A DNA stretch of 64,000 bases from Monocercomonoides exilis PA203 (lineage: Eukaryota > Protista > Preaxostyla), in NCBI GenBank assembly GCA_001643675.2, contig LSRY02000045.1:558001-622000 (forward strand), written 5' to 3'. The position numbers and the translations under genes are program-made. Positions 1-50,074 of the stretch are shown piece by piece. Each line of letters begins with the position of its first letter. The first letter of the stretch is position 1. The notes under the pieces were generated by a model that was not told where the DNA came from, searched no databases, and was given only the letters and a program-made list of their open reading frames with translations.

Positions 1-2193
1 TAAATGAAAAAATACAACTAAAAACAACGATTTAGTCATAAATTATGAATAAATTCAAATATCTGTTTTATAACAAATTATTCAAAAAATGATTGTTATT
101 TGAACATTCTGATAAAAAAGTTTCAAAATCTTTGAAAATAGAAACAAAAATCGAAAATGCTTTAATTATCAAAAATATTGTATTTATCAACAATCATGAT
201 TTAAAAGTCGCTTTAGATTGCGATGATAATAAAATTGTCATAGATTTTTAAATGAGCTGCTTTTGTTTTCTGATGATTGTGAATCATGAACATCACAGAT
301 AATCTTGTATCAATGAGTGTATTATTGTGAAGTGATTGAATATTATTCAAAGTCTGAAAATCAATTTATTTTCATTTATTTTTCAAATAAAAAAAATAAT
401 AATTTAAAAAGATTAGAGAAGAAATCGTGTCAAATTATTTATGGTGAACTGTATATTTTTTCAAAATATTGTTCGAATAGACATTTGTTCACAAATGGGT
501 GATTATTCTTGAAATCATAGAAAAGATCTGGGGGTGAATTATTCACTCATCTCCTTTTGAATGAAGTTATTTGTATTGAATTGAAATTGACACAAACAAT
601 GGTGTTGAATAACGAATGTGATGTTATCTCCTTTCAGAGAGTTGATAAATGTCATTTTCCAAAAATTATGAAAAATCTGAATTGATTGACATAACGTGTC
701 TGATTTCGAAAAAATAGAATAACCTTGAATTGAATAGTCCTCAACCTTTCAAATCATTGTTGGAATGGTATCAGCAATTTATTTTTTGAAAAAGACATTT
801 GATCTTGAAACACTCATCTCTTGCTCATTTCTCAATGATTGTTTGTTGTTGAGTCTTTTCATCTCAAACAAATGTTTTGAAATTTTTTTCTTCTTGATCC
901 TTATTTCTTATTTTCAGATATCTCAACTTTTGTTCAATAAGTGGTAAATTGGGAAAGAATTTGAATAACAAACTTATGAGGAAAAAGGAATGAGCATTAT
1001 CCTTTTTGAAAAGAAACAAAAACATGTCAAAAATTAAAAAGAATGTGAAATGAAATCATTCAATTTTCTTTGTTCCAAAATATTCAAATGTCTCTATTAA
1101 TCAGCAAAAACAAACAATTTTTCCATTAATGAAAATAATTTCATTTCACATTCTTTTTAATTTTTGACATGTTTTTGTTTCTTTTCAAAAAGGATAATGC
1201 TCATTCCTTTTTCCTCATAAGTTTGTTATTCAAATTCTTTCCCAATTTACCACTTATTGAACAAAAGTTGAGATATCTGAAAATAAGAAATAAGGATCAA
1301 GAAGAAAAAAATTTCAAAACATTTGTTTGAGATGAAAAGACTCAACAACAAACAATCATTGAGAAATGAGCAAGAGATGAGTGTTTCAAGATCAAATGTC
1401 TTTTTCAAAAAATAAATTGCTGATACCATTCCAACAATGATTTGAAAGGTTGAGGACTATTCAATTCAAGGTTATTCTATTTTTTCGAAATCAGACACGT
1501 TATGTCAATCAATTCAGATTTTTCATAATTTTTGGAAAATGACATTTATCAACTCTCTGAAAGGAGATAACATCACATTCGTTATTCAACACCATTGTTT
1601 GTGTCAATTTCAATTCAATACAAATAACTTCATTCAAAAGGAGATGAGTGAATAATTCACCCCCAGATCTTTTCTATGATTTCAAGAATAATCACCCATT
1701 TGTGAACAAATGTCTATTCGAACAATATTTTGAAAAAATATACAGTTCACCATAAATAATTTGACACGATTTCTTCTCTAATCTTTTTAAATTATTATTT
1801 TTTTTATTTGAAAAATAAATGAAAATAAATTGATTTTCAGACTTTGAATAATATTCAATCACTTCACAATAATACACTCATTGATACAAGATTATCTGTG
1901 ATGTTCATGATTCACAATCATCAGAAAACAAAAGCAGCTCATTTAAAAATCTATGACAATTTTATTATCATCGCAATCTAAAGCGACTTTTAAATCATGA
2001 TTGTTGATAAATACAATATTTTTGATAATTAAAGCATTTTCGATTTTTGTTTCTATTTTCAAAGATTTTGAAACTTTTTTATCAGAATGTTCAAATAACA
2101 ATCATTTTTTGAATAATTTGTTATAAAACAGATATTTGAATTTATTCATAATTTATGACTAAATCGTTGTTTTTAGTTGTATTTTTTCATTTA
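1..2193. repeat. Palindrome 1: arms 1-1056 and 1138-2193 with an 81-bp spacer (left arm truncated by the window start)
   Basis: Mirror positions sum to 2194; identical ORFs on opposite strands (317-502/1692-1877, 765-947/1247-1429). Confidence 0.97.
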
Positions 2194-2387
2194 TTCCGTT
2201 TACATGCATCCACAAAATTTTTATCAACAAATCATTTTCATAAAAAAAAATTCTTTTTCGTGAAGCATACGTATGCTCAATAAAAAAATAACACTTCATC
2301 ACCTGATACTTTAATAAAAAAGATAATAAAAAGAAAACTTCATAATTTCTATTTTTTTTTCCTCTCTTCAGTTTGCGTGTTGTGCAG

Positions 2388-4594
2388 TCAGAACAAAATA
2401 AACAACAAACAATTTTCTCCCAATGCAAATCCAATAAAATATGGATCGATAATCAGAAGTTGGGTCATTTTCATGTTTTCAATCTCCACATCAATCGTCT
2501 TCAGCTGCCTCAGCGCAACATCTAACACAGATATTGATATTACACTCCCTCCTGATGTCGAAGAGTTGAGCACCACATCCTCCAGCGAAAGAGTCCCGCT
2601 CCCCAGTGACACCACAAACACACTCGGCGATGAGCTTCTTGTCGCGTTGTGATCGATCCCCACATGCCCCACCTCCAGTTGGCCAGAAGATATGCTAAAC
2701 AGAGTAGTTGCAGACGAAGAAAGCGCACTTGTCCCAATCACACTCACTGCCTTCCCTTTCCCCAAAACAGAAATCTTCTTTTCCCCAACACTGATTGTTG
2801 TCCCTTCACTCACATGCCTCCCACTCAGCACTGTGATTGTCGAGCTCAGCTGCGCCATGCTCGAACTCACTGCATGCCCCACTGTCTTGCAAGGTGCTGC
2901 CTCACTCATCCCACACAGATTGCTCGCATCATCCCCACCCACCCCAACATACCGATCCTTCATCCCTTCCTTCAGCCATCCCTTCTTTTCTGTATGCTGA
3001 TATTTCCAACTGCTTGATTGCAAATAAGCATAGCACACTCTCTTCTCATCACTATTCGTTGTATACGATTCGTGGAATGGGTTGCTCGATGAGAAGAAAT
3101 TGTAACGATCTTCAAAATACACATCGTGGCCATATGGAGTGGAATTACTGCAACTGCAATCGTGGAAGAAGAAGAAATAGCAATAAGTGTTGTTGCTTGG
3201 AGCTGTTGATTGATATGGCCTGAAATCCAATCCTCCGCCAACTGACACTGCTGAGCACGAAATAAATTGGAGGCTCCTCATTTTGAATGCAGCTGGAACA
3301 CTTTGGCAATACATCCCTCCGCCACAATTACTTGTAAGCGAGCACGAAGTGAAAAACACTCAAACACACAAGCACTCTCCCCTTTGCCGCTTTCTGTTCC
3401 AATACAGGAAGATCCAGAAACATTAAAATTTTCGAGATAAAGCCCTCCTCCCACTCGATCTGCTTTGCAATTCTGAAATTCACAGCCGCTGATCCTGACA
3501 CATGACGAAATTGATAGAGCATATATCCCTCCTCCATAATAATTTTTTGCAGTACATGCATTGAATGAGTTGTTCTCAATATTGATTGAACTGATCGAAC
3601 GACACATAATTCCTCCACCATAAGCATATGCATAGCAATCATTGAATGAACAAAATTTCACTGAAAGCGTTCCCGATCCCAGATTATACATGTTAATCGC
3701 CCCTCCACTCGATATCCCATCTGAATAAGAACCACTTGTTCCAGTGGTTTTTGTGCCATTCCACACGCACCAAGTGAACGAATTTGCCCCATTGTCTGCT
3801 ATCTGCTGTCTCGCTGGTTTCGATGGATTCCCTTCACTCCCGCTGACTGCAACATTCTCAGACCGATAGCATCTGATAAATGAGGTGTTCGAGGCAGACA
3901 AGGATGATGAGGGGCTGTTCAGTGAGGGTACAATGCCTCCATCATACACATCCCACACTGATGAAAATGTGCACCCACTCATCAGAAACGAGGTTTGGCT
4001 CGGCCCTTCACCCAGATGTGGTGTTTTCGATGGATTTGTGGAGATGTTGAAGAAGGTTAGCTGGGTGAGTGTCATAAGGCGTGTCAGGGGAGGCGCCAGA
4101 AACGGGGCTGAAGACACACAAAAAGATGAGAAATCGGACTCACTCACCAATACACTCCCTTCTTCTTCACTTTCTTCTTCTTTTCCTTTTCCTCTTCCTT
4201 CTCCACCTCTTCTTCCTCCACCTCCTCGTTGTCCTCCTCTCTCTCCTCCTTCAGCTCTTCCACTTCCTCTTCCCCATCCGACTCTTCCTCTTCCCCCACC
4301 TTCTCTCTCACTCCTCGTCTGCCCCATCCTCCCCTCTCCTCCAAACAGTCTCCCACACACATTTCCTCCCCTTCCAACCCCTCTCAGCGTGATGTTCCAA
4401 AACACCCCTCTGCACCTGCCCAGCTCAAACACCCCTGCCTCCTTGCCTCTCCCCATCTCCACACCACATCCCCTCACCACAACCACACTCCCCCTCATTC
4501 CACACACTGAACAACAATTATCATAATTCTCCAATAAAATTTGATTTAACTCAACCGACGGGTTCAATAACTCCCTCACAAAAAAATATCTCAC
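2388..4594 (-). pseudogene. 3'-truncated Cys/Gly-rich beta-helix-like surface protein cassette, frameshifted near 3355
   Basis: ORFs 3278-4594 and 2388-3359 join into a ~730-aa homolog of the N-terminus of 13296-22100 (GGAINMY, GGGIMC, GGGMYC, GHDVYF); no TM anchor. Confidence 0.85.
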
Positions 4595-5790
4595 CTTCTT
4601 CCTTTTTCCAACTTTTCTTCAAATATCTCTAAAAAATCATATCTCTGATTTTCCAGTTCCCTTCTTTCTTCGCTTCCATCAGATTTTCATAAAGTTTTCT
4701 CTTTCAATCGAACTTCCAAAAAAAAATGTCTTATTCTTCTCAAACATTTGCCAAACTTCTTCTTCTGCTGCATCATCAATTCCTTGATCTCATTTTCGGC
4801 TTTTAACAAGATTCGTCGTATATGTCTTCCAAAACCTTCAAAAAAAGAAAGAAAAATATCTTCTTTTTATTTAATTTATATTTTGTGCCTGCTCACTCCT
4901 CCATGCATCCTTCCAATTGTTGTTTTCTGACTTCTTTAATGCATTTTGTATCCTCTCTTTCAATATTCTATAGGCATATATTCGCAGTAAATATACCTGC
5001 AAAACAATCTAATTTCATAAAAAAATAATACATGAAAAATCGTAATAAAAAAAGCAAACCTATATCTTTTATGATGATCATTCTTCTCAAACTTTCTTCT
5101 TTTTCTTCAATTATTTCTCCGTTTTGCCAACAAAATCCATCTGCCTCATCTTTGATTCCCTTCTGCTCCCAAAAATCGTTCATTTCCAATCCTCGGTACT
5201 GCTTCCACTCAAATAGCTCAACCAGCTCCATTCTATAAAAAAATGACAAGAAGATTCCATCTGAAGAGCCCCTTTCCATCCCTTCTCGCTGCATCACCTT
5301 CTTCTTCTCCACATCTCCCCCAAAGCAACATCAACACCCCTCCGCCACATATCCTCCATCTCTTCCATTTCATTCCTCATCATCCTTTTCCCAATCAAAA
5401 ATATAAATGCCTCCAATATTTTGCCTCTCTTTGGTGCAAAACACCCTTTCGTGGTCAGCCCCTCATCTTCCTCTGTCTCCACACCCCCAATGCAAAGTGC
5501 TGCGCCTGACGTTCCTTCTTCCCGTCTTCCTCCGCCTCCGCCTCCATCCCTTGTTCCGCAAATGCCTGGCGCGTCCAAACGGTTCACAAAATAAATTATA
5601 TAAGAATATGAAATATTTTCTTTCATTTTTCTTCTTCTCCAACCCCACTTCCCTCTCAAATAACACACGCATCCACAAAAACTCTCCCACTTGCTCCACC
5701 TCATATGAACCCCCCTTCTCTCGGTGCATTTGGAAAAAAACATACATCCCTTTTCCATCTCTTCCCCAGCCCTCCTTCTTTCTCCCACAT

Positions 5791-6554
5791 ATCTTCCACT
5801 CCAATAATAATATTCCATTCGCCACATCCATCTTCTTCCCCTCTGCTCCCCCTTCGCCTCGCCCCACCTCCTCTACATCAAAATCCTTTTCTCCAATAAT
5901 TAACACAACCCCCGCTCCTTCCCAATGACAAAAATCTCAAAAATAACCCCTCCCAACCTCATCCCAATCCATCTCCCACACATCCATTTTGCCTCTTAAA
6001 TCTCATAAAAACACCTCTTTCTCTCTCCTCAAAAAAAAATCTTCCTTTTATCGTTCCTTTCCCCTCCAAAACGTTGTTTCTCCACAAACACTCAAATCCT
6101 TCCTCAAGCACAATAAATCCATTCTTTTGTAATCACGTTGTCTTCATGTGCCCATTCAGCCACAGCGCATCGTGTTGTGCCCCTTTTCTGAATCCGCCCC
6201 AAATCTGTTATGGAGACGATCAAGCCAAGCCAAATTCAACAAAAGTGGCACAACCACCCGCAGAGCGGAAGTTCCATGCACTCAAAATATGGCAGCTGGA
6301 ATGGGCGAGTTTTATGCAGCGATGAGGCAGATAGGACTGCAACTGTGTTTTTCTGAGGGAAGTGAACGCTGAATATTCTGACTGCTGGAAGGCGTGTTGG
6401 AGCACGAGCTTCCGCAGCACCACCGAAAAGAGGGGCAGTTTGTGCTTTATTTTTTGTTTGTGCTTATCAAAGAATTTTATTTTTATTTTTATTTTCATAA
6501 TTGAAAAGGCGTGATGATATTGTTCGAAATTGACAAATGACAAATTCATTCGAT
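5791..6554 (+). repeat. ~764-bp direct repeat, copy 1 (copy 2 at 38276-39039)
   Basis: Near-identical sequence at offset 32485; identical ORFs 6074/38559 and 6148/38633. Confidence 0.95.
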
Positions 6555-7574
6555 GAGATGAGGAGCGAGAAGCAGATGAGAACACACTATTTCAGAAATT
6601 TGAGGGGAGTGGGGCAAAGGAAAGAAATGATGATTGCCAATTTTTTTAATGAAGATTGAACAAAAGAAAAGGAATTCATGTAAATTGGAAAGAAATTGAA
6701 AACGAAAAAGAAAAACAGGATCCAATGACTTGAAGATGATAAACGAGATTTTCTTGTTTTCAGGCGGACTGATTGAAAATCAGTTTCATTTGAAGGAAGA
6801 ATTTTTTCGATAGTTTCAAAAAATACATTTGTTTCGTTAGGTGGAGAAAGGGTTCCTAAAACGGAAGATTAGAATTCGGAAGATGAAGTGATTGAAGGGA
6901 AAAGGCGGATGAGAAGTTGAAGTGGAGGAGAAAGAGAGGAAAAAGAAGAAGAGGAGGATGAGGAGGAAGAAGAGGAAGAAACTGAAGAAAGAAAGGAAAA
7001 TAGAGATAGAAAAAGACTAAAAAAAAAAAAAAAAACAATGTATGTGCATATTAAATCAATGAAACAACAACATTTGTATACACAGAAAAATATTTTTATT
7101 TTCATTTTTCACAACATAATCATCAATATCTTCTCCTTCTCCTTCTCCTTCTCCTTCTCCTCCTTCTCCTTCTTCTTAGACTTCTTCCTTATCTCTCATT
7201 ATTCTTGTCCATTTCATTCACATATCTCCTCTGGCTTTTCTCGTTCTGTCTGATTTCTATTCAACATCAGAATTTGACTCTCCTTCTCTTTCACTCAATT
7301 TCTTTGCTTTTGAGATAAACCAGCTTCGTTTTTCACCTTCGGTTCTGATGATCTTTTCATCGCCTTTTTCCTGATTTGATCCAGGTTCTTCTTTTTCGTT
7401 GACTTTTTCATCATCTGCTTATTTTTTTTCCTTCCAACTTTCGATTCATTCATCATTTCTTCCTCTTCTTCTTCTGAATTTTGAATGTCAATGAAAACAG
7501 AATTATTGGAGAACGAATGGGAAAAGGCAAAAGAAGACTTTTCCATTGAACACATCGGCAAGATGCTACTTTAG

Positions 7575-30868: not shown

Positions 30869-32769
30869 TTGAAAAGGATTGGGCTGATTGGAGATGAAAT
30901 TGGGAGGATTGTGTGTGGAACGAGGGGGAGTGTGGTTGTGGTGAGAGGATGTGGTGTGGGGATGGGGAGAGGCAAGGAGGCAGGGGTGTTTGAGCTGGGC
31001 GGGTGCAGAGGGGTGTTTTGGAACATCACGCTGAGAGGGATTGGAAGGGGAGGAAATGTGTGTGGGAGGCTGTTTGGAGGAGAGGGGAGGATGGGGCAGA
31101 CGAGGAGTGAGAGAGAAGGTGGGGGAGGAAGAGGAAGAGTCGGATGGGGAAGAGGAAGCGGAAGAGATGAAGGAGGAGAGAGAGGAGGACAACGAGGAGG
31201 AGGAGGAAGAAGAGGTGGAGAAGGAAGAGGAGAAGGAAGCGAAGAAGAAAGTGAAGGAGGAGGGAGTGTATTGGTGAGTGAATCAGATTTCTCATCTTTT
31301 TGTGTGTCTTCAGCCCCGTTTCTGGCACCTCCCTGACACCCCTTGTGACACTCACCCAGCTGACCTTCTTCAACATCTCCACAAATCCACTGAAAGCAAC
31401 ACATTTGGCTGAAGGGCCGAGCCAAAGAGTGTTTCTGATGAGTGGATGTGAATTTGTGTCAGTGTGGGATGTGTATGATGGGGGCATTATCCCTTCACTC
31501 AACAGCCCCTCATCGTCATTGGCTGCCTCGAACACCTCGTTTGTCGGGTGCTATCGGTCTCAGAATGTTGAAATCAGTGGGAGTGAGGGGAATCCATCGA
31601 AGCCAGCGAGACAGCAAATTTCTACAGATTTAACGAATTCGTTCACTTGGTGCGTGTGGAATGGGTCAAAAACCACTGGGACAAGTGGATCTTATACAGA
31701 TGGAGTTTCGAGTGGAGGGGCGATTAACATGTATAGCAAGACATCAGGAACACTTTCAGTGAAGTTTTGTTCGTTCAATGACTGCTATGCGCATTATGCT
31801 GGGGGAGGAATTATGTGTCATACAATAAATACAATCAAAATCGAAAACAACTCATTCAATGCATGTACCGCTCAAAAAGATTACGGAGGAGGAATGTATG
31901 CTTATTCGATTTCTTCGTGTGTCAAGGTCAGTGGCTGTGAATTTAAGAAATGCAAAGCAAGTTACGATGGAGGAGGATTATTTCTCCAATCTTTTAATGT
32001 TTCTGGATCTTCATGTGTTGGAACGGAAAATGGCAAAGGGGAAAGTGCTTGTGTATTTGAGTGCTCATTTACTTCGTGTTCTCTGACAAATTCTTATGGC
32101 GGAGGGATGTATTGCCAAAGTGTTCCAGCAGCATTCAAGATGAGGAGCCTCCAATTTATTTCGTGCTCGGCATATTCATATGGCGGAGGATTGGATTTCA
32201 GGCCATATCAATCAACAGCCCCAAGTTACAATCAATATTGCTATTTCTTCTTCTTCCACGATTGCCGTTGCAGTAATTCCACTCCATATGGCCACGATGT
32301 GTATTTTGAAGATTATTACAATCACTTTTCTTCGAATAACCCGTTCTATGAATCGTATACAACGAATAGCAATGATAAGAGAGTGTGTTATGCTTATTTG
32401 CAATCAAGCAGTTGGAAATATCAGGAAACACAAAAGAAGGGATGGTTGAAGGAAGGGATGAAAGATCGATATGTTGGGGTAGGTGGGAATGACGCAAACA
32501 ATCTGTGTGGAATGAGTGAGGCAGCACCGTGCAAGACAGTGGGGCATGCAGTGGGGTCGAGCATGGCGCAGCTGAGCTCGACAATCACGTTGCTGGGTGG
32601 AAGGCATGTGAGCGAAGGGACAACAATCAGTGTTGGGGAAAAGAAGATTTCAGTTGTTGGGAAAGGGAAAGCAGCGAATGTGATTGGGACAAGTGCGCTT
32701 TCTACCTCTTCGACAACGCTGTTCAGCATATCTTCTGGTCAACTGGAGGTGGGGCATGAGACAAGTTAG
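30869..32769 (+). pseudogene. Truncated surface-protein cassette, palindrome 2 left arm (1-nt deletion near 31331)
   Basis: ORFs 30869-31336 and 31300-32769 together correspond to the 633-aa right-arm ORF; CCC versus CCCC. Confidence 0.85.
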
Positions 32770-35166: not shown

Positions 35167-37068
35167 CTAACCTGTCTCATGCCCCACCTCCAGTTGGCCA
35201 GATGATATGCTGAACAGCATTGTCGAAGAGGTCGAAAGAGAATTCGTCCCAATAACACTCACTGTCTTCCCTCTCCCTGTTATTATTATCTTCTTTTCCC
35301 CAACACTGATTGTTGTCCCTTCGCTCACATGCCTTCCACCCAGCAACGTGATTGTCGAGCTCAGCTGCGCCATGCTCGACCCCACTGCATGCCCCACTGT
35401 CTTGCACGGTGCTGCCTCACTCATTCCACACAGATTGTTTGCGTCATTCCCACCTACCCCAACATATCGATCTTTCATCCCTTCCTTCAACCATCCCTTC
35501 TTTTGTGTTTCCTGATATTTCCAACTGCTTGATTGCAAATAAGCATAACACACTCTCTTATCATTGCTATTCGTTGTATACGATTCATAGAACGGGTTAT
35601 TCGAAGAAAAGTGATTGTAATAATCTTCAAAATACACATCGTGGCCATATGGAGTGGAATTACTGCAACGGCAATCGTGGAAGAAGAAGAAATAGCAATA
35701 TTGATTGTAACTTGGGGCTGTTGATTGATATGGCCTGAAATCCAATCCTCCGCCATATGAATATGCCGAGCACGAAATAAATTGGAGGCTCCTCATCTTG
35801 AATGCTGCTGGAACACTTTGGCAATACATCCCTCCGCCATAAGAATTTGTCAGAGAACACGAAGTAAATGAGCACTCAAATACACAAGCACTTTCCCCTT
35901 TGCCATTTTCCGTTCCAACACATGAAGATCCAGAAACATTAAAAGATTGGAGAAATAATCCTCCTCCATCGTAACTTGCTTTGCATTTCTTAAATTCACA
36001 GCCACTGACCTTGACACACGAAGAAATCGAATAAGCATACATTCCTCCTCCGTAATCTTTTTGAGCGGTACATGCATTGAATGAGTTGTTTTCGATTTTG
36101 ATTGTATTTATTGTATGACACATAATTCCTCCCCCAGCATAATGCGCATAGCAGTCATTGAACGAACAAAACTTCACTGAAAGTGTTCCTGATGTCTTGC
36201 TATACATGTTAATCGCCCCTCCACTCGAAACTCCATCTGTATAAGATCCACTTGTCCCAGTGGTTTTTGACCCATTCCACACGCACCAAGTGAACGAATT
36301 CGTTAAATCTGTAGAAATTTGCTGTCTCGCTGGCTTCGATGGATTCCCCTCACTCCCACTGATTTCAACATTCTGAGACCGATAGCACCCGACAAACGAG
36401 GTGTTCGAGGCAGCCAATGACGATGAGGGGCTGTTGAGTGAAGGGATAATGCCCCCATCATACACATCCCACACTGACACAAATTCACATCCACTCATCA
36501 GAAACACTCTTTGGCTCGGCCCTTCAGCCAAATGTGTTGCTTTCAGTGGATTTGTGGAGATGTTGAAGAAGGTCAGCTGGGTGAGTGTCACAAGGGGTGT
36601 CAGGGGAGGTGCCAGAAACGGGGCTGAAGACACACAAAAAGATGAGAAATCTGATTCACTCACCAATACACTCCCTCCTCCTTCACTTTCTTCTTCGCTT
36701 CCTTCTCCTCTTCCTTCTCCACCTCTTCTTCCTCCTCCTCCTCGTTGTCCTCCTCTCTCTCCTCCTTCATCTCTTCCGCTTCCTCTTCCCCATCCGACTC
36801 TTCCTCTTCCTCCCCCACCTTCTCTCTCACTCCTCGTCTGCCCCATCCTCCCCTCTCCTCCAAACAGCCTCCCACACACATTTCCTCCCCTTCCAATCCC
36901 TCTCAGCGTGATGTTCCAAAACACCCCTCTGCACCCGCCCAGCTCAAACACCCCTGCCTCCTTGCCTCTCCCCATCCCCACACCACATCCTCTCACCACA
37001 ACCACACTCCCCCTCGTTCCACACACAATCCTCCCAATTTCATCTCCAATCAGCCCAATCCTTTTCAA
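35167..37068 (-). CDS. Truncated surface-protein cassette, palindrome 2 right arm (open 633 aa, no TM, start uncertain)
   Basis: Homolog of the N-terminus of 13296-22100; ends at GQLEVGHETG. Confidence 0.7.
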   Translation of the reverse strand: MKRIGLIGDEIGRIVCGTRGSVVVVRGCGVGMGRGKEAGVFELGGCRGVFWNITLRGIGRGGNVCGRLFGGEGRMGQTRSEREGGGGRGRVGWGRGSGRDEGGERGGQRGGGGRRGGEGRGEGSEEESEGGGSVLVSESDFSSFCVSSAPFLAPPLTPLVTLTQLTFFNISTNPLKATHLAEGPSQRVFLMSGCEFVSVWDVYDGGIIPSLNSPSSSLAASNTSFVGCYRSQNVEISGSEGNPSKPARQQISTDLTNSFTWCVWNGSKTTGTSGSYTDGVSSGGAINMYSKTSGTLSVKFCSFNDCYAHYAGGGIMCHTINTIKIENNSFNACTAQKDYGGGMYAYSISSCVKVSGCEFKKCKASYDGGGLFLQSFNVSGSSCVGTENGKGESACVFECSFTSCSLTNSYGGGMYCQSVPAAFKMRSLQFISCSAYSYGGGLDFRPYQSTAPSYNQYCYFFFFHDCRCSNSTPYGHDVYFEDYYNHFSSNNPFYESYTTNSNDKRVCYAYLQSSSWKYQETQKKGWLKEGMKDRYVGVGGNDANNLCGMSEAAPCKTVGHAVGSSMAQLSSTITLLGGRHVSEGTTISVGEKKIIITGRGKTVSVIGTNSLSTSSTMLFSISSGQLEVGHETG

Positions 37069-38275
37069 CTCAACTGAAGAGTTTCATAACTCCCTCACAA
37101 AAAAATATCTCATCTTCTTCCTTCTTCCAACTTTTCTTCAAATTTTCATTAAATATTCTCTTTTCATTTTTTCTTCCTTTTCATTCAAATCATCTCTTTC
37201 ATTCAAATTTCTTATAAACATATTTTTCTTTTCAATCATTTGCCAAATTCCTTCTTCTGCTGCATCATCAATTTTTCTGCTCTCTCTTTTTGCTTTTAAC
37301 AAGATTCACCCGACTCGTCTTCTAAAATCATCAAAGACCTCCTCCTCTATTCGCTTCAATTTTTGCTCCTTCTCCTTCCACCAAACGCCCTCCAATTATT
37401 ATCTCCAGATTTCTTAAAGGCGCCCAATATGCTTTTTCCCCATATTCCATGTTCATTCATTGGCATTGAACATTCTTGCAAAAATCCTAGTTTCATAAAA
37501 AAAAAATAAAATATATGAAAAATCGTAATAAAAAAAGGCAAACCTATTCTTTTAATGATGATCATTCTTCACTGATTTTCTTCTCCTCCTCCAAAATTTT
37601 CTCCGTTTTGCCAACAAAACCCATCTGCCCCATCTTCGTTTCCTTTCTGCCCCCAAAATCGTTTATTTACAATCCTTGGTCCTGCTCCCACTCAAATAAC
37701 TCAGCCAGCTCCATTCTTTTTAAAAAAACTAGCAATGAAGAATATTCCATCCGAAGAGCCCCTTTCCATCCCTTTCTTCTGCATCACCTTCTTCTTCTCC
37801 ACATTTCCCCCAAAACAGCAGCAATGCCCCTCCACCCACATCCTTCACTCCCTGTTACTTCTTTTCCCATCATCCTTCTCCTAATCAAAAAATAAATATT
37901 TCATTTCTTTGAATGTCTCTTGAGCAAAACACCCCCTCATGGTCAGCCCCTCATCTCCCTCCATCCCTGTCGCGAATCCTTCCCCACACCCACAATGCAA
38001 AGTGTTGCGCCCGATGTTCCTTCTTCCCATCTTCCTCCACCTCAGCCTCCATCCCTTGCCCTGCAAATGAGAGGCGCGCCCAAACGGTTCACAGAATAAG
38101 TTATATAAAAATATTTAAAAAAAACTCTCTCACTTTTTTTCCCCCTTCAACCCCGCTTCTCTTTCTTATAAAACATACATCAGCAAAATCTTTTCCCTTT
38201 GCTCTGCCTCATATGAACTCCTCCTTCTCTCGGTACATATAAAAATAATCCCTTTTCCATATCTCTCCATCTTTT

Positions 38276-39039
38276 ATCTTCCACTCCAATAATAATATTC
38301 CATTCGCCACATCCATCTTCTTCCCCTCTGCTCCCCCTTCGCCTCGCCCCACCTCCTCCACATCAAAATCCTTTTCTCCAATAATTAACACAACCCCCGC
38401 TCCTTCCCAATGACAAAAATCTCAAAAATAACCCCTCCCAACCTCATCCCAATCCATCTCCCACACATCCATTTTGCCTCTTAAATCTCATAAAAACACC
38501 TCTTTCTCTCTCCTCAAAAAAAAATCTTCCTTTTATCGTTCCTTTCCCCTCCAAAACGTTGTTTCTCCACAAACACTCAAATCCTTCCTCAAGCACAATA
38601 AATCCATTCTTTTGTAATCACGTTGTCTTCATGTGCCCATTCAGCCACAGCGCATCGTGTTGTGCCCCTTTTCTGAATCCGCCCCAAATCTGTTATGGAG
38701 ACGATCAAGCCAAGCCAAATTCAACAAAAGTGGCACAACCACCCGCAGAGCGGAAGTTCCATGCACTCAAAATATGGCAGCTGGAATGGGCGAGTTTTAT
38801 GCAGCGATGAGGCAGATAGGACTGCAACTGTGTTTTTCTGAGGGAAGTGAACGCTGAATATTCTGACTGCTGGAAGGCGTGTTGGAGCACGAGCTTCCGC
38901 AGCACCACCGAAAAGAGGGGCAGTTTGTGCTTTATTTTTTGTTTGTGCTTATCAAAGAATTTTATTTTTATTTTTATTTTCATAATTGAAAAGGCGTGAT
39001 GATATTGTTCGAAATTGACAAATGACAAATTCATTCGAT
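38276..39039 (+). repeat. ~764-bp direct repeat, copy 2
   Basis: Matches 5791-6554. Confidence 0.95.
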
Positions 39040-40472: not shown

Positions 40473-41398
40473 GAATATTTGTATATTTTTTGTTTGCATC
40501 CTTTTCTTGATTAGCTGTGAGAGAGCATTTTGAGGAGAGAGCAGACTTTTATTTGTTTGTTGAAGGAGAATGGGGAATGGGAGTTGGGAGAGAAAGGAGA
40601 GCGGATGAAGAAAGAAACTGGAGAAGGCAAAAGCAGAAGGGGAATAGGAGACAAAAGGAATGCCATTTGCAGCATTGCATGAGAAGTACGATCTTCTTCT
40701 TCTTCTTCTTCTTCACCTTTTTCAACTTTATTGACTTCTTCATCGATGTATTTTCCAAATTTATCATCGTCTTCATCGTCTTCATCTACTGCTTCTTCTT
40801 CTTCTTCTGCTGCTGCTGCTGTTTCTGTTCTGGAGCAGTGCGATCCTCAGATGCTGTCGAAAGCTGAGATAATAAATGAGATGAAGCTTCTAATGTGATT
40901 GGTGCGGTTGGTGCGATTGCTTGCATTTTAGCGAGGTGGGTGGAGACGAGGGAGGAGGAAAAGGAGTCGGAGTGCAATGAGGCAAGGAATGTGCTGCTGT
41001 CAGATGATGATGAGGCATGGAGGATGATTTTTTGTGGATTGGCTGGTTTTGGTGTGGATGGAATTTTGGTGGAGTATTTTGTTGTGGTGGTTGGTGGATG
41101 GAGTTTGGAGGGGTGGGCAAGAGCTGGATGAAGCATGAATGATGGGAGTGAGCGTTGTTAGCTGGCTGCGGGCGATAGAAGGAGAATGCTGGGAAAAGCA
41201 AGAGACTCAAAAGAGAAAGGAAAAGAAGAATATGGAGAGGGATTTTTCGGAGGGAGAGAAGAAAAAGGAGACTGAAGAATAAGGATGCAAAAATACAAAC
41301 GGTTTGCATTTATTTTATCAGATTGATTGATTTTTCCCTTCAAAAAATTAAATAATTATGTTGAAAAAAATAACATTATTCATTTCTATTTTAATGAT

Positions 41399-41534
41399 AT
41401 TTTCATATTTTCATATTTTCATATTTTCATATTTTCATATTTTCATATTTTCATATTTTCATATTTTCATATTTTCATATTTTCATATTTTCATATTTTC
41501 ATATTTTCATATTTTCATATTTTCATATTTTCAT
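41399..41534 (+). repeat. (ATTTTCAT)n octamer array, ~17 units
   Basis: Seen directly. Confidence 0.95.
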
Positions 41535-41813
41535 ATTTTTTATATCTTGCGATATTAGAATTTCAGCATGGGCGCTCTTTAGCAAGGGGGTAACAAGGAA
41601 CTTGGAAGCGCTGGCGTTCGAGCGAATTTGGAATTATGGCAGAAGATGGCGACTGAGGGGCAATGAGCTGAATCAGCTGGGAAAGAGCTTGATAGATTCA
41701 TAAATTATATAAGGCATTGGCAGAGAAAAGGAGCTTTTACATTTTTTTTTACAAGAATTCTTTTATGAGCAGCAGAAAGAGACAAGAAAAGGGTTGCAGA
41801 ATAATTTGAGATT

Positions 41814-43737
41814 TTGATGAAAATTGTATTGAGAGGGATGGGGCAGACGAGGAACGAGAGAGAATGTGGAGGAGGAAGAGGAAGGGGTGAAGGAGGAGAG
41901 AGAGGAGGACAACGAGGAGGTGGAGGAAGAAGAGGTGGAGAAGGAAGAGGAAGCGAAGGAAGAGAAGAAGAAAGTGAAGGAGGTGGGAGTGTATTGGTGA
42001 GTGAGTCGTACTTCTCATCTTTTTGTGTGTCTTCAGCCCCGTTTCTGGCGCCTCCCCTGACACCACTTGTGACACTCACCCGACTGGCCTTCTTCAACAT
42101 CTCCACAAATCCATCGAAAACAACACATCTGGGTGAAGGGCTGGGCCAAACATCATTTCTGATGAGTGGATGTGAATTTGTGTCAGTGTGGGATGTGTAT
42201 GATGGGGGCATTGTCCCCTCGCTGAACAGCCCCTCATCATCCTTGGCTGCCTCGAACACCTCGTTTGTCAGGTGCTATCGATCACAGAATGTTGCAGTCA
42301 GCGGGAGTGAGGGGAATCCATCGAAACCAGCGAGACAGCAGATAACAGACAATGGGGCAAATTCATTCACTTGGTGTGTGTGGAATGGGTCAAATACAAC
42401 TGGAAATCAAAATTCTGTTTCAGATGGAGTTTCGAGTGGAGGAGCTATAAACATGTATGGTTTGTCATCAGGAACACTTTCAGTGAAATTTTGTTCTTTC
42501 AACAACTGCTATGCAAACTATGCTGGGGGAGGTATTTTTGCTATTCAATCAATTCAGTCAAGATTGAGAACAACTCATTCAATGCTTGTACAGCAAAAAA
42601 TTGCTACGGAGGGGGATGTATGCTTATTCGATTTCAACATGTGTCAGGATCAGTGGGTGCGAGTTCCAGAACTGTAAGGCATATAGTAATGGAGGAGGAC
42701 TTTTTCTTAATTCTTTTAATGTTTCTGGATCTTCATGTATTGGAACAGAAAATGGGAAAGGCGAGAGCGCTTGTGTGTTTGAGTGCTTATTCACTTCGTG
42801 CTCACTGACAGATAGATTTGGCGGAGGGATGTATTGCGATAATGTCCCTTCTGCAATCAAAATGAGGAGCCTCCAGTTCATTTCGTGCTCAGCGGTGTCG
42901 TATGGCGGAGGATTGTATTTCAGGACATATCAATCAACAGCCCCAAGCAACAATCATTATTGCTATTTCTTCTTCTTCCACGATTGCAGTTGCAACGCTT
43001 CCACTCCATATGGCCACGATGTGTATTTTGAAGATCGATACAATCTTTTTTCATCGAACAATCCTTTTTATGAATCGTACACAACGAATAGCAATGATAC
43101 AAGAGTGTGCCTCCAATATTATAATGGAAGCAGTTGGGTGCCTCAACATACAGAAAAGAAGGGATGGTTGAAGGAGGGGATGAAAGATCGGTACGTTGGG
43201 GTGAGTGGAGATGACGCAAACAATCTGTGTGGGATGAGCGAGTCAGCACCGTGCAAGACAGTGGGGCATGCAGTGGGGTCGAGCATGGCGCAGCTGAGCT
43301 CGACAATCACGTTGCTGGGTGGGAAGCATGTGAGTGAAGAGAAGACGATCAGTGTTGGGGAAAAGAAGATAATAATAACAGGGAGAGGGAAGGCAGTGAG
43401 TGTGATTGGGACGAATTCTCTCTCTTCGTTTTCTCCAACGCTGTTTAGCATATCTTCTGGCCAACTGGAGGTGGGGCATGTGGGGATCGATCACAACTCG
43501 ATGAGAAGCTCATCGCCGAGTGTGTTTGTGGTGTCACTGGGGAGCGGGACACTTTCGCTGGAGGATGTGGTGATCAACTCTTCGACGCCAGGAGGGAGTG
43601 GAATGACGAAGTGTGTGTTTGAAGTGGCACTGAGGCAGTTGAAGACGATTGATGTGGAGATTGAAAACATGAAAATATCACAGCCTCTTTTCGCTGAACC
43701 ATCACAAACAGGATTGGCATTGGGAGAAAATTATTAA
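41814..43737 (+). pseudogene. Truncated surface-protein cassette, palindrome 3 left arm (two homopolymer frameshifts)
   Basis: Matches 46346-48271 except 1-nt losses in a T run (~42537) and a G run (~42612). Confidence 0.85.
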
Positions 43738-46345
43738 TTATTTATTTTATTTTGACTTCACAACACACAAACTGAAGAGAGAGAAAAAAATAGAAATTCT
43801 GAGATTAACTTTTTGTTATCTTTTTTATTGAAATGAAATATGATGAAGTGTTATTTTGCATTGAGCATACGTATGCTTTATGAAAAATATTTTTTTTTTT
43901 TTTTTATGAAATTGATTTGTTGATAAAAATTTTGTGGATGCATGAAAAGATGAAATAAATGATAAAAACCACCAAAAACAATAGCAAAATTGTTAATTAT
44001 GAATTATTTCAAATTTCATTTTTTTAACAAATTATTCCAAAAATGATTCTTTTATTGAGAGTTATGTTCCAAAAATTGTTCGATGCCAAACATTGCAACA
44101 AAAATCGAAAAAGTTATTATTAAGAAAACAGAATATATCAACAATAATGATTTTGAAAATGATTTCAGATTGTGAAAAGTGTAAAATTGTTAAAGATTTT
44201 TAAATGAGCTGCTTCTGTTTTCTGATGATTGTGAATCATGAACACCACAGATAATTTTGTTTCAATGAGTAAATTATTGTGAAGTTATTGAATATTATTC
44301 AAACTCTGAAAAACATATTATTTTCATTCACTTTTTGAAAAGAATAATTTTGAAGATAAAAGAAGGATTTGTGTCAAATTATTTATAGGGATCTGTATTT
44401 TTTTTCATAATATTGTTCAAATGAAAATTTGTTCACAAATGGGTGATTATTCTTGATATCAAACAATATTTCTTGGAGTGAATTATTTCCATTATTCACT
44501 TTTCAATGAAGTTATTTGTGTTGAATCGAAATTGACACAAAGAATGGTGATGAACAATAAATGTGATATTTTTTCCTTTCAGAGAGTCAATTGATGTTGT
44601 TTTCCAACAATCATTAAAAATCTGAATTGATTGACAGAACGTGTCTGATCTCAAAAAATAGAATAGCCTTGAATAGCATAATCCTCAAAACAATGAATTA
44701 TTATTGGAATAGTATCAACAATTAATCTCTAGAAAAAGACATTTGATTTTGAAACACACATCTCTTGCTCATTTCTCAATGATTATCAGTTGTTGAGTCT
44801 TTTCATCTCAAACAAATGTTTTGAAATATTTTTCTTCTTGATCCTTTTTATTTATCTTCAGATGTTTCAACTTTTGATCAGAAAGTGGCTAATTGGGAAA
44901 GAATTGGAATAACAAGGTGAAGAGGAAAAAGGGTTGGGCATTTTTAATTTTTAAAAGAAACAAAAACATGTCAAAAATTAAAAAGAATGTGAAATGAAAT
45001 CATTCAATTTTCTTTGTTCCAAAATATTCAAATGTCTCTATTAATCAGCAAAAACAAACAATTTTTCCATTAATGAAGATGATTTCATTTCATATTTTCA
45101 ATATACAAATGAATATATGTTTCTTTTCAAAAAGAATAATGCTTATCCATCTTTCCTCTTCACCTTGTTATTCCAATTCTTTCCCAATTAGCCACTTTCT
45201 GATCAAAAGTTGAAACATCTGAAGATAAATAAAAAGGATCAAGAAGAAAAATATTTCAAAACATTTGTTTGAGATGAAAAGACTCAACAACTGATAATCA
45301 TTGAGAAATGAGCAAGAGATGTGTGTTTCAAAATCAAATGTCTTTTTCTAGAGATTAATTGTTGATACTATTCCAATAATAATTCATTGTTTTGAGGATT
45401 ATGCTATTCAAGGCTATTCTATTTTTTGAGATCAGACACGTTCTGTCAATCAATTCAGATTTTTAATGATTGTTGGAAAACAACATCAATTGACTCTCTG
45501 AAAGGAAAAAATATCACATTTATTGTTCATCACCATTCTTTGTGTCAATTTCGATTCAACACAAATAACTTCATTGAAAAGTGAATAATGGAAATAATTC
45601 ACTCCAAGAAATATTGTTTGATATCAAGAATAATCACCCATTTGTGAACAAATTTTCATTTGAACAATATTATGAAAAAAAATACAGATCCCTATAAATA
45701 ATTTGACACAAATCCTTCTTTTATCTTCAAAATTATTCTTTTCAAAAAGTGAATGAAAATAATATGTTTTTCAGAGTTTGAATAATATTCAATAACTTCA
45801 CAATAATTTACTCATTGAAACAAAATTATCTGTGGTGTTCATGATTCACAATCATCAGAAAACAGAAGCAGCTCATTTAAAAATCTTTAACAATTTTACA
45901 CTTTTCACAATCTGAAATCATTTTCAAAATCATTATTGTTGATATATTCTGTTTTCTTAATAATAACTTTTTCGATTTTTGTTGCAATGTTTGGCATCGA
46001 ACAATTTTTGGAACATAACTCTCAATAAAAGAATCATTTTTGGAATAATTTGTTAAAAAAATGAAATTTGAAATAATTCATAATTAACAATTTTGCTATT
46101 GTTTTTGGTGGTTTTTATCATTTATTTCATCTTTTCATGCATCCACAAAATTTTTATCAACAAATCAATTTCATAAAAAAAAAAAAAAAAAAATATTTTT
46201 CATAAAGCATACGTATGCTCAATGCAAAATAACACTTCATCATATTTCATTTCAATAAAAAAGATAACAAAAAGTTAATCTCAGAATTTCTATTTTTTTC
46301 TCTCTCTTCAGTTTGTGTGTTGTGAAGTCAAAATAAAATAAATAA

Positions 46346-48271
46346 TTAATAATTTTCTCCCAATGCCAATCCTGTTTGTGATGGTTCAGCGAAAAGAGGC
46401 TGTGATATTTTCATGTTTTCAATCTCCACATCAATCGTCTTCAACTGCCTCAGTGCCACTTCAAACACACACTTCGTCATTCCACTCCCTCCTGGCGTCG
46501 AAGAGTTGATCACCACATCCTCCAGCGAAAGTGTCCCGCTCCCCAGTGACACCACAAACACACTCGGCGATGAGCTTCTCATCGAGTTGTGATCGATCCC
46601 CACATGCCCCACCTCCAGTTGGCCAGAAGATATGCTAAACAGCGTTGGAGAAAACGAAGAGAGAGAATTCGTCCCAATCACACTCACTGCCTTCCCTCTC
46701 CCTGTTATTATTATCTTCTTTTCCCCAACACTGATCGTCTTCTCTTCACTCACATGCTTCCCACCCAGCAACGTGATTGTCGAGCTCAGCTGCGCCATGC
46801 TCGACCCCACTGCATGCCCCACTGTCTTGCACGGTGCTGACTCGCTCATCCCACACAGATTGTTTGCGTCATCTCCACTCACCCCAACGTACCGATCTTT
46901 CATCCCCTCCTTCAACCATCCCTTCTTTTCTGTATGTTGAGGCACCCAACTGCTTCCATTATAATATTGGAGGCACACTCTTGTATCATTGCTATTCGTT
47001 GTGTACGATTCATAAAAAGGATTGTTCGATGAAAAAAGATTGTATCGATCTTCAAAATACACATCGTGGCCATATGGAGTGGAAGCGTTGCAACTGCAAT
47101 CGTGGAAGAAGAAGAAATAGCAATAATGATTGTTGCTTGGGGCTGTTGATTGATATGTCCTGAAATACAATCCTCCGCCATACGACACCGCTGAGCACGA
47201 AATGAACTGGAGGCTCCTCATTTTGATTGCAGAAGGGACATTATCGCAATACATCCCTCCGCCAAATCTATCTGTCAGTGAGCACGAAGTGAATAAGCAC
47301 TCAAACACACAAGCGCTCTCGCCTTTCCCATTTTCTGTTCCAATACATGAAGATCCAGAAACATTAAAAGAATTAAGAAAAAGTCCTCCTCCATTACTAT
47401 ATGCCTTACAGTTCTGGAACTCGCACCCACTGATCCTGACACATGTTGAAATCGAATAAGCATACATCCCCCCTCCGTAGCAATTTTTTGCTGTACAAGC
47501 ATTGAATGAGTTGTTCTCAATCTTGACTGAATTGATTGAATAGCAAAAAATACCTCCCCCAGCATAGTTTGCATAGCAGTTGTTGAAAGAACAAAATTTC
47601 ACTGAAAGTGTTCCTGATGACAAACCATACATGTTTATAGCTCCTCCACTCGAAACTCCATCTGAAACAGAATTTTGATTTCCAGTTGTATTTGACCCAT
47701 TCCACACACACCAAGTGAATGAATTTGCCCCATTGTCTGTTATCTGCTGTCTCGCTGGTTTCGATGGATTCCCCTCACTCCCGCTGACTGCAACATTCTG
47801 TGATCGATAGCACCTGACAAACGAGGTGTTCGAGGCAGCCAAGGATGATGAGGGGCTGTTCAGCGAGGGGACAATGCCCCCATCATACACATCCCACACT
47901 GACACAAATTCACATCCACTCATCAGAAATGATGTTTGGCCCAGCCCTTCACCCAGATGTGTTGTTTTCGATGGATTTGTGGAGATGTTGAAGAAGGCCA
48001 GTCGGGTGAGTGTCACAAGTGGTGTCAGGGGAGGCGCCAGAAACGGGGCTGAAGACACACAAAAAGATGAGAAGTACGACTCACTCACCAATACACTCCC
48101 ACCTCCTTCACTTTCTTCTTCTCTTCCTTCGCTTCCTCTTCCTTCTCCACCTCTTCTTCCTCCACCTCCTCGTTGTCCTCCTCTCTCTCCTCCTTCACCC
48201 CTTCCTCTTCCTCCTCCACATTCTCTCTCGTTCCTCGTCTGCCCCATCCCTCTCAATACAATTTTCATCAA
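46346..48271 (-). CDS. 5'- and 3'-truncated surface-protein cassette, palindrome 3 right arm (open 641 aa)
   Basis: Homolog of the N-terminal region of 13296-22100; no signal peptide or TM. Confidence 0.7.
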   Translation of the reverse strand: MMKIVLRGMGQTRNERECGGGRGRGEGGERGGQRGGGGRRGGEGRGSEGREEESEGGGSVLVSESYFSSFCVSSAPFLAPPLTPLVTLTRLAFFNISTNPSKTTHLGEGLGQTSFLMSGCEFVSVWDVYDGGIVPSLNSPSSSLAASNTSFVRCYRSQNVAVSGSEGNPSKPARQQITDNGANSFTWCVWNGSNTTGNQNSVSDGVSSGGAINMYGLSSGTLSVKFCSFNNCYANYAGGGIFCYSINSVKIENNSFNACTAKNCYGGGMYAYSISTCVRISGCEFQNCKAYSNGGGLFLNSFNVSGSSCIGTENGKGESACVFECLFTSCSLTDRFGGGMYCDNVPSAIKMRSLQFISCSAVSYGGGLYFRTYQSTAPSNNHYCYFFFFHDCSCNASTPYGHDVYFEDRYNLFSSNNPFYESYTTNSNDTRVCLQYYNGSSWVPQHTEKKGWLKEGMKDRYVGVSGDDANNLCGMSESAPCKTVGHAVGSSMAQLSSTITLLGGKHVSEEKTISVGEKKIIITGRGKAVSVIGTNSLSSFSPTLFSISSGQLEVGHVGIDHNSMRSSSPSVFVVSLGSGTLSLEDVVINSSTPGGSGMTKCVFEVALRQLKTIDVEIENMKISQPLFAEPSQTGLALGENY

Positions 48272-48550
48272 AATCTCAAATTATTCTGCAACCCTTTTCT
48301 TGTCTCTTTCTGCTGCTCATAAAAGAATTCTTGTAAAAAAAAATGTAAAAGCTCCTTTTCTCTGCCAATGCCTTATATAATTTATGAATCTATCAAGCTC
48401 TTTCCCAGCTGATTCAGCTCATTGCCCCTCAGTCGCCATCTTCTGCCATAATTCCAAATTCGCTCGAACGCCAGCGCTTCCAAGTTCCTTGTTACCCCCT
48501 TGCTAAAGAGCGCCCATGCTGAAATTCTAATATCGCAAGATATAAAAAAT

Positions 48551-48774
48551 ATGAAAATATGAAAATATGAAAATATGAAAATATGAAAATATGAAAATAT
48601 GAAAATATGAAAATATGAAAATATGAAAATATGAAAATATGAAAATATGAAAATATGAAAATATGAAAATATGAAAATATGAAAATATGAAAATATGAAA
48701 ATATGAAAATATGAAAATATGAAAATATGAAAATATGAAAATATGAAAATATGAAAATATGAAAATATGAAAAT
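48551..48774 (-). repeat. (ATGAAAAT)n octamer array, ~28 units (mirror of the 41399 array)
   Basis: Seen directly. Confidence 0.95.
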
Positions 48775-50074
48775 ATCATTAAAATAGAAATTATAAATGT
48801 TATTTTTTTCAACATAATTGTATCATTTTTTGAAGGGAAAAGTCAATCAATCTGATTAAATAAATGCAAACCATTTGCATTTTTGAATTCTTATTCTTTT
48901 TCTTTTTTTTGCATATTTCTGTAAATATCAGTTCCGCCTTTCTTCAGGCTTTCCCTCACCAATTCTATTCATCCGCTGCACTCATCATTTTCCATTCATC
49001 ATTTTGGCAATTATCTTTCGTTCTATTCCTCAAAAACAGCTCCTTGAAATGTCTCATCCCCTTCCTTCATTTCACTCCAGCTCTCTTTGAACAATTCAGT
49101 CACATCCAGAAAAGCTGTTCTGCCCATCATCAAAGAAAGGCCTTCTTCCATCTCAAACTTTTGTAGAACTGTCCTTAATTCTCTCATCCAACCTGTTCCG
49201 CTCTGAAACAAGCACTTTGTAAGAGAGAAGAAAGAGCCAAGGCACAAAGGAATAAAGAAATTCATGTTTCAGTGTTCCTGATAATGATTGAAATTGATGC
49301 AGAAATAAAAAAAACAGAGAAATTTGAAAAATAATAAAACAGAATTTCAATAAACCTTCAGTGCATTTATTCAGAAAAATAACCTTTGCTCCAAATCAAC
49401 CATTTCAACACAAAAGAATAAAAAAGCAGATCCGGTTTTGTACACTTTTGCTAGACAATTGAAACAAAATTCTATCATTAGAAATGATCAAAAACTTAAA
49501 ACGAAACTCCAACCGCATCAAATAATTTATTGCTCTGTTTTCTTTGCAATGACTTTTACATTAGTGTGCATGTGTAAGTTGTTCTAAACATTTATAATTT
49601 GAACTTCTTTCAAAGTGTATAAAAAACTTTCGGCACATGGGAACTGTCGGGTTTATTTCCATTAAATTATTATCATTTCCATTTCAAAATAATTTCTCTT
49701 TTGAACATTTTTAAAAATTGTGCTGTAAATCAACTTTTTCTGTTGATTCTGCAAGTTGGATGCTGCATTCAAAAATTTTGATAAATCATTCAGAGATAGA
49801 AAAATTCATAAAAGAAAAATATGAAAATTAAAATTCAAAAACAGTGAATCAGAAAGGAAAAATTTAAATAAATACGAACAATAAATAATGAGCGTTGTTG
49901 AATGAAATTCAACTTTTCTTTGAAAGCTGGAAGAATTTATTAAAATATGTTCAACAAAGCATTGAATTTGGGTCTTATATTTATAAAAAGTTTAAAATTA
50001 TTATAAATTCGCAGAATCCTCCAATGAAAATTTTAAATTTTCTTTAAAATTGTTTATTTGTGAAATATATAACT

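Follow-up and report, generated by a model that had tools for sequence, protein, structure and literature searches.

Palindromes with truncated receptor-kinase ectodomain cassettes in Monocercomonoides exilis, and their sequence exchange with full-length genes

Three palindromes lie in a stretch of 64,000 nucleotides ("the window": contig LSRY02000045.1, 810,774 bp in all, positions 558001-622000, assembly GCA_001643675.2) from the genome of Monocercomonoides exilis, a gut flagellate without a mitochondrion. Each palindrome, whether P1 (10.9 kb), P2 (9.5 kb) or P3 (7.6 kb), contains a convergent pair of "cassettes", that is, short copies of a receptor family cut at both ends. Palindromes exchange patches of 70-600 bp with one another, as cassettes do among themselves and with full-length genes. 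Window coordinates are used throughout; overlapping loci add 12 kb upstream (negative numbers) and 24 kb downstream (numbers above 64000), and L002, L003, L004, L005, L007, L008, L009 and L011 are labels of other M. exilis loci with which comparisons were made. The entire analysis concerns sequence data from one strain of M. exilis.

Self-comparison of the window bears out the claim of an earlier note on this DNA that three palindromes lie within 49 kb, for which it had proposed a self dot-plot. That note saw paired cassettes in two of them and a single one in the third. The pairs in P2 and P3 stand; the single cassette of P1 does not, its left-arm partner being MONOS_15442, which is intact and lies outside the window (the first self-match of P1 within the window is 1-2193, and most 250-bp bins are 100% identical between its arms). 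A fourth palindrome, P0, has its center at about -10400, upstream of the window start. Centers are of two kinds: alpha (P1, P3 and locus L002) and beta (P0 and P2). Arms are 100% identical over multi-kb stretches, the exceptions being 1-bp homopolymer indels and discrete diverged tracts (in P2 the asymmetric tract and the outer collar, in P1 two small patches). To judge from the sequence, the one-arm frameshifts in each palindrome are probably 1-bp homopolymer nanopore errors rather than decay. Between palindromes, identity is 81-85%. Arms nearly identical within and diverged between palindromes had also been claimed, together with the arm-to-arm gene conversion of which they are the mark; both hold, with arms at ~100%, against ~82% between palindromes sharing a center.

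Are the palindromes real? Perfect mirrors are a known nanopore artifact, and fold-back chimeras whose arms had been homogenized by polishing might account for these. The assembly was generated from unamplified, ligation-kit nanopore genomic DNA with Canu, followed by Nanopolish and ten Pilon rounds (PMC8767320): that much polishing could inflate apparent arm identity, if only slightly, but an unamplified ligation library argues against chimeras, and so do the palindromes themselves: 1) their spacers are unique, asymmetric, and common to diverged palindromes (95 of 96 bp, and, for P0 and P2, 162 of 162 bp); 2) differences between arms fall in tracts that match other palindromes at 100%, as does the right-arm version of the P2 asymmetric tract, which, at a distance of 44 kb, is identical over ~500 bp to each arm of P0; 3) a homologous palindrome exists, at L002, with arms that are just 83% identical. 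Because shared spacers, P0-matching arm tracts and the diverged arms of L002 do not fit a fold-back chimera, the palindromes are taken to be real genomic inverted duplications, and the artifact is scarcely credible. (The L002 palindrome, at 12700-13030, is of the alpha type with its center deleted; 99% arm identity is confined to the inner 300 bp, with 77-96% further out.) A fold-back or giant terminal-inverted-repeat transposon with a captured gene (the Pack type) was considered and rejected: identity fades out gradually at the outer ends, which are not alike from one palindrome to the next. By eye, no target-site duplication is found at the ends of P1, P2 or P3.

The centers merit separate attention. 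P1 and P3 are only ~82% identical overall, yet an exact run of 125 bp crosses the unpaired spacer. The P0 and P2 spacers are in opposite orientation, for which inverted duplication accounts as well as spacer inversion does. Comparison of the palindrome centers with the other compared loci (rather than with the whole genome) yields matches of 24-60 bp only.

What do the cassettes contain? The receptor family comes in two frames, subfamilies A and B, that are ~66% identical in DNA. The closest full-length relative of the cassettes, at 84-88% nucleotide identity, is MONOS_11638 (67201-78260, 3 kb past the window), a subfamily A gene with a signal-peptide exon, an intron, a large ectodomain, one transmembrane (TM) helix and a PF07714 kinase. 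Cassette homology to this gene begins abruptly, either after the signal-peptide exon (Y-type) or ~60 codons further on (X-type), and breaks off at one of a few shared points: the signal-peptide exon and at least 100 aa are missing at one end, ~2,900 C-terminal aa at the other, and what is spanned is only the outermost 550-700 aa of the receptor. Stop positions and C-terminal tails vary, running into AT-rich DNA. Hydropathy agrees with the earlier description of the cassettes as devoid of TM anchor and signal peptide: an N-terminal hydrophobic stretch is present in 2 of 110 short proteins of the family and in 64 of 125 long ones. The cassettes had, in addition, been identified as the N-terminal ~600-700 aa of the family represented by the full-length gene at 13296-22100. 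The family is the right one; the N-terminal end is not, given what the cassettes lack there, and the subfamily differs. At 66% nucleotide and 54-69% amino acid identity, the 13296-22100 gene, in which no Pfam kinase was found, is of subfamily B, while the cassettes are of subfamily A, and it is rejected as their cognate parent on that ground.

The non-coding 5' element "Y" of the P1 cassette also lies 5' of the P2, L002, L008 and L009 cassettes and of subfamily B cassettes (~71%). The possibility that it is a hidden signal-peptide exon was dismissed: it is indel-rich, and it matched no N-terminus of a long homolog among the matches listed. Truncation of the cassettes is not an intron artifact either: tblastn finds no further full-length exons in the AT-rich centers, and homology stops at fixed shared points. 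No Pfam family matches the cassettes.

Their full-length relatives belong to the tyrosine-kinase-like (TKL) expansion of M. exilis: the long homologs (at least 120 listed) are 1600-4300 aa in length, are encoded on many contigs and mostly have PF07714; at least seven are on this contig, several full-length A genes among them. The TKL family is the largest in M. exilis, taking in 320 of its 332 tyrosine kinases (PMC6759080), and overlaps with unclassified repeats (PMC8767320). The named homologs among 120 listed for the P3 cassette are all M. exilis proteins; distant relatives of the family are found in Streblomastix strix. The predicted fold of the cassette is a right-handed parallel beta-helix (pectin lyase-like). 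Residues 102-400 form the core of the AlphaFold2 model, with a predicted local distance difference test score mostly above 85; the best VIA-align match is to 5mqp_A (Z 19.5, root-mean-square deviation 4.2, 262 residues aligned), and the top 50 are mostly parallel beta-helix proteins, while Foldseek against PDB returns nothing at E<=0.001. The outer beta-helix domain is probably the ligand-binding tip of the receptor. (A distant, stop-interrupted member of the beta-helix family, ~25% identical in amino acid sequence to the 13296-22100 gene, lies at 25163-26554 on the + strand.)

The cassettes look non-expressible as receptors, yet their open reading frames (ORFs) are open and selected. Uninterrupted ORFs run to 428-746 codons in nine A-cassette copies and to 484-650 in nine B copies, and there are no in-frame stops in the aligned cores of the former or in the latter. 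Non-coding DNA past the shared stop has accumulated ~0.2 substitutions per site and 4-28 indels per kb; the neutral expectation from this flanking divergence is 4-8 stops per cassette. Since the aligned cores have none, the ORFs must be maintained, whether selection acts on them directly or conversion restores them from selected copies. The pairwise ratio of nonsynonymous to synonymous divergence (dN/dS) is 0.29 between cassettes, 0.29 between cassettes and full-length genes, and 0.28 between full-length genes. The corresponding ratio for cassette polymorphism (pN/pS) rises from 0.10 in the framework to 1.19 in the 30 codons of highest variability, the variability classes having been defined on other subfamilies. 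The hypervariable codons, with a Tyr content of 20% (3% elsewhere), occupy fixed offsets on either side of every GGG turn, an arrangement consistent with one variable binding face. At a coarse scale, variability along full-length genes does not single out the domain matched by the cassettes (81-86% vs 77-98% elsewhere).

Might the cassettes be expressed all the same, as short cytosolic or unconventionally secreted beta-helix decoys, or, by convergent read-through, as hairpin RNA silencing the receptor family? Intact ORFs with in-frame ATGs, under purifying selection, would suit expression, and the perfectly inverted tail-to-tail layout would yield hairpin RNA. However, hairpin RNA needs no open ORFs, other palindromes are head-to-head (for example that at L003, of at least 15.8 kb), a Cys-rich extracellular fold comes here with no signal peptide (the 2 of 110 noted above), and the variable stops and tails reading into AT-rich DNA also count against a product; expression of either kind is quite improbable.

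The recombination among paralogs that the earlier note had anticipated is found. Among 12 A copies, the pairwise homoplasy index (PHI) is 0.563, against a null value of 0.672 (standard deviation 0.005), and falls below all 2000 permutations (p<0.0005). Globally significant identical tracts are present in 10 of the 66 pairs: 6 of 36 cassette-cassette pairs and 4 of 27 that join a cassette to a full-length gene. Exact tracts reach 251 bp between cassettes (P0/P1) and 431 bp with full-length genes (MONOS_16438/MONOS_16280); those of MONOS_11638 with P2 and P3, and of P3 with P0, are entered in Table 1. Of the MONOS_11638 variable core, 39% lies within exact matches of at least 50 bp to one or other of ten cassettes, versus 5% for shuffled pools; the same test gives 31% for MONOS_16438 and 0% for MONOS_8047. 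The latter looks like a crossover product, because a cassette-type 5' flank without signal peptide is joined there to a 3' part that is 99.4% identical to that of MONOS_16438. (L007, at 1-21844, and L011 hold tandem 16-kb receptor units, MONOS_16438 and MONOS_8047, the 99.4% identity of whose 3' parts extends over 5.6 kb; they are ~90% identical in the variable 5' domain, and the annotation splits the kinase off in both as a distinct gene downstream.)

One transfer is polar. Diagnostic sites along the 13296-22100 gene are B at 55 of 60, then A at 26 of 33, then B again at 27 of 28, and its A-block score of +0.15 makes it a clear outlier among 42 B-framed long genes (-0.06 to +0.06). No B-type block was found in ten A cassettes tested, and the central part of the cassette is uniformly A in all 19 A cassettes. 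An A block in a B gene without B blocks in return indicates that sequence moved from A copies into the 13296-22100 gene, at hypervariable rungs; the nearest A copies to the block are cassettes. Many long members (P0130, which is MONOS_4582, P0148, P0191 and others) are A/B frame chimeras in the outer domain, from which it follows that block exchange is family-wide.

Table 1. Coordinates of palindromes, cassettes and related features (window numbering)
Feature	Position	Strand	Remarks
Palindrome P1, alpha-type center	1..6558 in window, whole -4369..6558	.	99.2% over 10.9 kb
P1 unpaired spacer	1055..1140	.	spanned by 125-bp exact P3-center match (1009-1133 = 44953-45077)
P1 right cassette, subfamily A, alpha 3' end	2388..4554	-	1-bp homopolymer indel near 3357 vs left-arm copy
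GA-rich non-coding 5' element "Y"	4555..6558	-	stands in place of signal-peptide exon
Full-length 2934-aa beta-helix surface protein, subfamily B frame	13296..22100	+	TM helix aa 2595-2613
Subfamily A (cassette-type) block in B-type gene	14190..14850, boundaries approximate	+	diagnostic sites
Palindrome P2, beta-type center	29230..38708	.	outer collar diverges gradually
P2 left cassette	30854..32769	+	1-bp indel near 31330 vs right arm
Asymmetric tract of P2	32649..33263, mirror 34664-35287	.	~88% arm vs arm
P2 spacer	33884..34045	.	162/162 identical to P0 spacer, reverse orientation
P2 right cassette	35167..37083	-	exact 283-bp (36708-36990) and 119-bp (35924-36042) tracts shared with MONOS_11638
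Linker and 5' ends between P2 and P3	38974..41684	.	inverted, 88% homolog of P0-P1 linker
Palindrome P3, alpha-type center	41275..48898 (41275/41397-48688/48898)	.	8-bp microsatellite arrays 41397-41539 and 48546-48776 near outer ends
P3 left cassette	41817..43737	+	two 1-bp homopolymer indels, 42534 and 42610, vs right arm
P3 spacer and asymmetric collar	44929..45151	.	left side matches P1
P3 right cassette, X-type 5' end	46346..48268	-	intact 640-aa ORF; exact 100 and 110 bp with MONOS_11638, 241 bp with P0
Internal frameshifted family fragment (aa 402-595)	56430..57121	+	second copy 63613-64302

The remainder of the window has other contents. A 3968-bp direct duplication (55679-59645 and 62862-66827, 99.87% identical), which carries the family fragment and is flanked by 41-bp repeat arrays, may be recent or an assembly error. 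An element resembling a miniature inverted-repeat transposable element (MITE), with 41-bp tandem repeats in both inverted ends, occupies 61713-62866 and recurs at 66821-67115, L007 24796-25717 and L011 6229-6953; a half copy ends 86 bp before the MONOS_11638 ATG, and another copy lies ~3 kb upstream of MONOS_16438. A hairpin MITE of ~260 bp (59785-60043) has relatives in L004, L005, L007, L009 and L011 and at 84847-87660. An ABCD-type half transporter (ABC_membrane_2 and ABC_tran) with long low-complexity inserts is encoded at 50060-53608 (+); transporters of this type are usually peroxisomal, a curious find in M. exilis, which is not known to have peroxisomes. An ORF at 27053-27910 (-) has a weak, IQCH-like ATP-grasp match below the Pfam cut-off. 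Two adjacent helical, Glu/Lys-rich ORFs of 273 and 171 aa, at 9201-10608 (-), are probably one spliced or frameshifted gene; nothing in Pfam matches the 273-aa ORF above cut-off. At 11890-11941 there is a run of poly-A, 52 bp long.

What are the cassette arrays for? The explanation to which we incline, with about as much doubt as confidence, is that they are a slow reservoir of conversion donors, supplying binding-surface variants to receptors over evolutionary time. Short-spacer palindromes would extrude hairpins or cruciforms and break near their tips; homologous repair would copy mostly the mirror arm, and sometimes a paralog or a sister palindrome; cassettes shuffled in this way would pass patches to nearby full-length receptors, and selection on the receptors would keep the cassette library readable. 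The donor network would be diffuse and mostly unprogrammed, not a single-site switch. Repair from sister palindromes at broken tips would account for spacers that differ less between palindromes than the adjoining arms do, as well as for the lost center of L002.

Several considerations weigh against such a reservoir. About half of ~24 sampled short copies lie outside near-perfect palindromes, as solo copies, head-to-head pairs or diverged convergent pairs; the break at the center is a trigger that we only infer; cassettes exchange mostly with each other. The 35-53 bp exact patches of the A block match full-length A genes as well as cassettes, and majority rule (many A copies, one B gene) could generate the same polarity. 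Back-conversion from functional genes could by itself keep cassette ORFs open. Genome-wide, significant protein-level tracts connect 1.5% of pairs when both copies are short, 0.34% when one is short and one long, and 0.35% when both are long (approximate rates: 40 permutations, some broken gene models being counted as "short"); the equality of the last two implies that cassettes are not privileged donors but one part of a family-wide conversion network.

The notion that the palindrome itself maintains the archive, put forward in the earlier note, is not supported: copies that stand alone, lie head-to-head or are 75-89% diverged are no less intact. As to enrichment of the family in palindromes, about half of the sampled short copies lie in near-perfect ones; around four A-type full-length genes, long palindromes were sought and not found. 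Four contigs, together 4.3% of the genome, hold 75 of 104 placed short matches and 5 of 107 placed long ones (a hand count over the matches listed, with contigs told apart by length); fragments are therefore clustered and full-length genes dispersed.

Alternatively, the arrays might be a by-product: unstable inverted segmental duplications undergoing neutral concerted evolution, with the cassettes as pseudogenes to which conversion from functional paralogs gives an intact look, to no selected benefit. Conversion that extends over non-coding centers and spacers, reassortment of centers and 5' ends between palindromes, a short-long tract rate no higher than the long-long, several full-length A genes on the same contig, and other duplications nearby (the 3968-bp direct repeat and the 16-kb tandem genes) are all in keeping with this. 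It is nevertheless unlikely, if worth serious attention: none of the 9 A-cassette cores or 9 B copies has an in-frame stop, though cassettes outnumber local full-length genes and exchange mostly mutually; the part of the 9-11 kb gene that the cassettes cover is not random but in every case the same variable domain; and A and B cassettes on different contigs share a flanking 5' element.

How far do known systems serve as a guide? The silent-archive analogy with vls and the variant surface glycoproteins (VSG), drawn in the earlier note, is sustained in part by cassette-gene tracts and the one polar transfer, but not as regards one-way or programmed flow or a single expression site. Borrelia vls (vlsE and vlsS; PMC11499132) similarly has partial variable-region copies, ~85-90% identical, near a full-length gene, with ORFs largely kept, variation at set positions, segmental conversion tracts and inverted repeats at the locus. 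Its cassettes are ~90% identical to the cognate gene, comparable to the 84-88% for MONOS_11638, and segmental conversion with full-length genes is seen here in 4 of 27 pairs, with tracts of 283 and 431 bp. The single expression site of vls is not matched in M. exilis, with its 120 or more long homologs listed, seven or more on this contig; for one-way transfer there is one polar case, and cassettes exchange mutually as often or more. Unlike vls, the M. exilis cassettes are separate inverted pairs rather than one contiguous array, have no sequence homology to it, and have a eukaryotic receptor kinase ectodomain as target. Programmed, fast, one-way switching in the manner of vls or of trypanosome VSG mosaics, for which MONOS_11638 or a handful of genes would serve as the expression site, is doubtful in the extreme: in its favor are doubly truncated cassettes so similar to a full-length gene beside them, a conserved frame with variable positions, the inverted repeats and a polar transfer, but donor matches cover only 39% of the MONOS_11638 core and 0% of that of MONOS_8047 (ten cassettes sampled), cassettes recombine among themselves as often, there are more than 100 full-length genes, and the target is a signaling receptor rather than any known coat antigen.

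Trypanosome VSG and Anaplasma msp2 build mosaics from silent pseudogenes, and most VSG pseudogenes are broken. An archive of partial genes, segmental conversion and mosaics are common ground; the M. exilis cassette ORFs, unlike those of most VSG pseudogenes, are intact, and the parallel covers sequence organization, not monoallelic expression or immune evasion. The Y- and X-chromosome palindromes (PMC3723533) share with those of M. exilis near-identical arms (identity far above that between palindromes, here ~100% vs 82%), conversion tracts of hundreds of bp to kb, and a unique spacer; the occurrence of that spacer in both orientations between related palindromes is also common to them, but for M. 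exilis inverted duplication accounts for it equally well. In contrast, the M. exilis palindromes measure 7-16 kb with spacers of 90-220 bp, belong to a unicellular eukaryote and are not on a sex chromosome, carry truncated cassettes instead of intact genes, and convert frequently between palindromes, spacers included. Diversification of immunoglobulin V genes and of the lamprey variable lymphocyte receptors (VLR) is somatic, deaminase-driven and aimed at one locus. Chicken and rabbit immunoglobulin V conversion and lamprey VLR assembly likewise patch a receptor binding surface from leaderless donor segments, with Tyr-rich hypervariable sites on a conserved frame (cf. PMC6008532, PMC13183705). 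M. exilis differs in its beta-helix fold and in that the mosaics seen are germline-like, on an evolutionary time scale. By analogy, then, the M. exilis arrays may work like pseudogene-donor conversion to which palindrome conversion of the Y type is joined.

Conversion from donor cassettes is familiar from pathogen coat antigens and vertebrate immune receptors; no earlier description was found of its use for the signaling receptor kinases of a protist, nor any of donors arranged in serial small palindromes. Neither PMC6759080 nor PMC8767320 describes a beta-helix ectodomain, truncated cassette arrays, palindromes or conversion, and no paper describing such cassette palindromes was found in the literature on oxymonads.

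A faster version of the scheme can be imagined, in which palindrome-driven diversification is active, tip breaks shuffling cassettes into receptor kinases quickly enough for clone-to-clone variation. That is improbable; if true, it would amount to an antibody-like repertoire sensing gut bacteria or host ligands. Whether the arrays are a slow reservoir or a by-product, many short "uncharacterized proteins" of the M. exilis annotation are receptor fragments. For the largest gene family of M. exilis, the model provides an initial structural interpretation, a predicted beta-helix with a Tyr-rich, paratope-like variable face, and the organism itself, single-celled and culturable, lends itself to measurement of palindrome conversion, spacer exchange and donor polarity.

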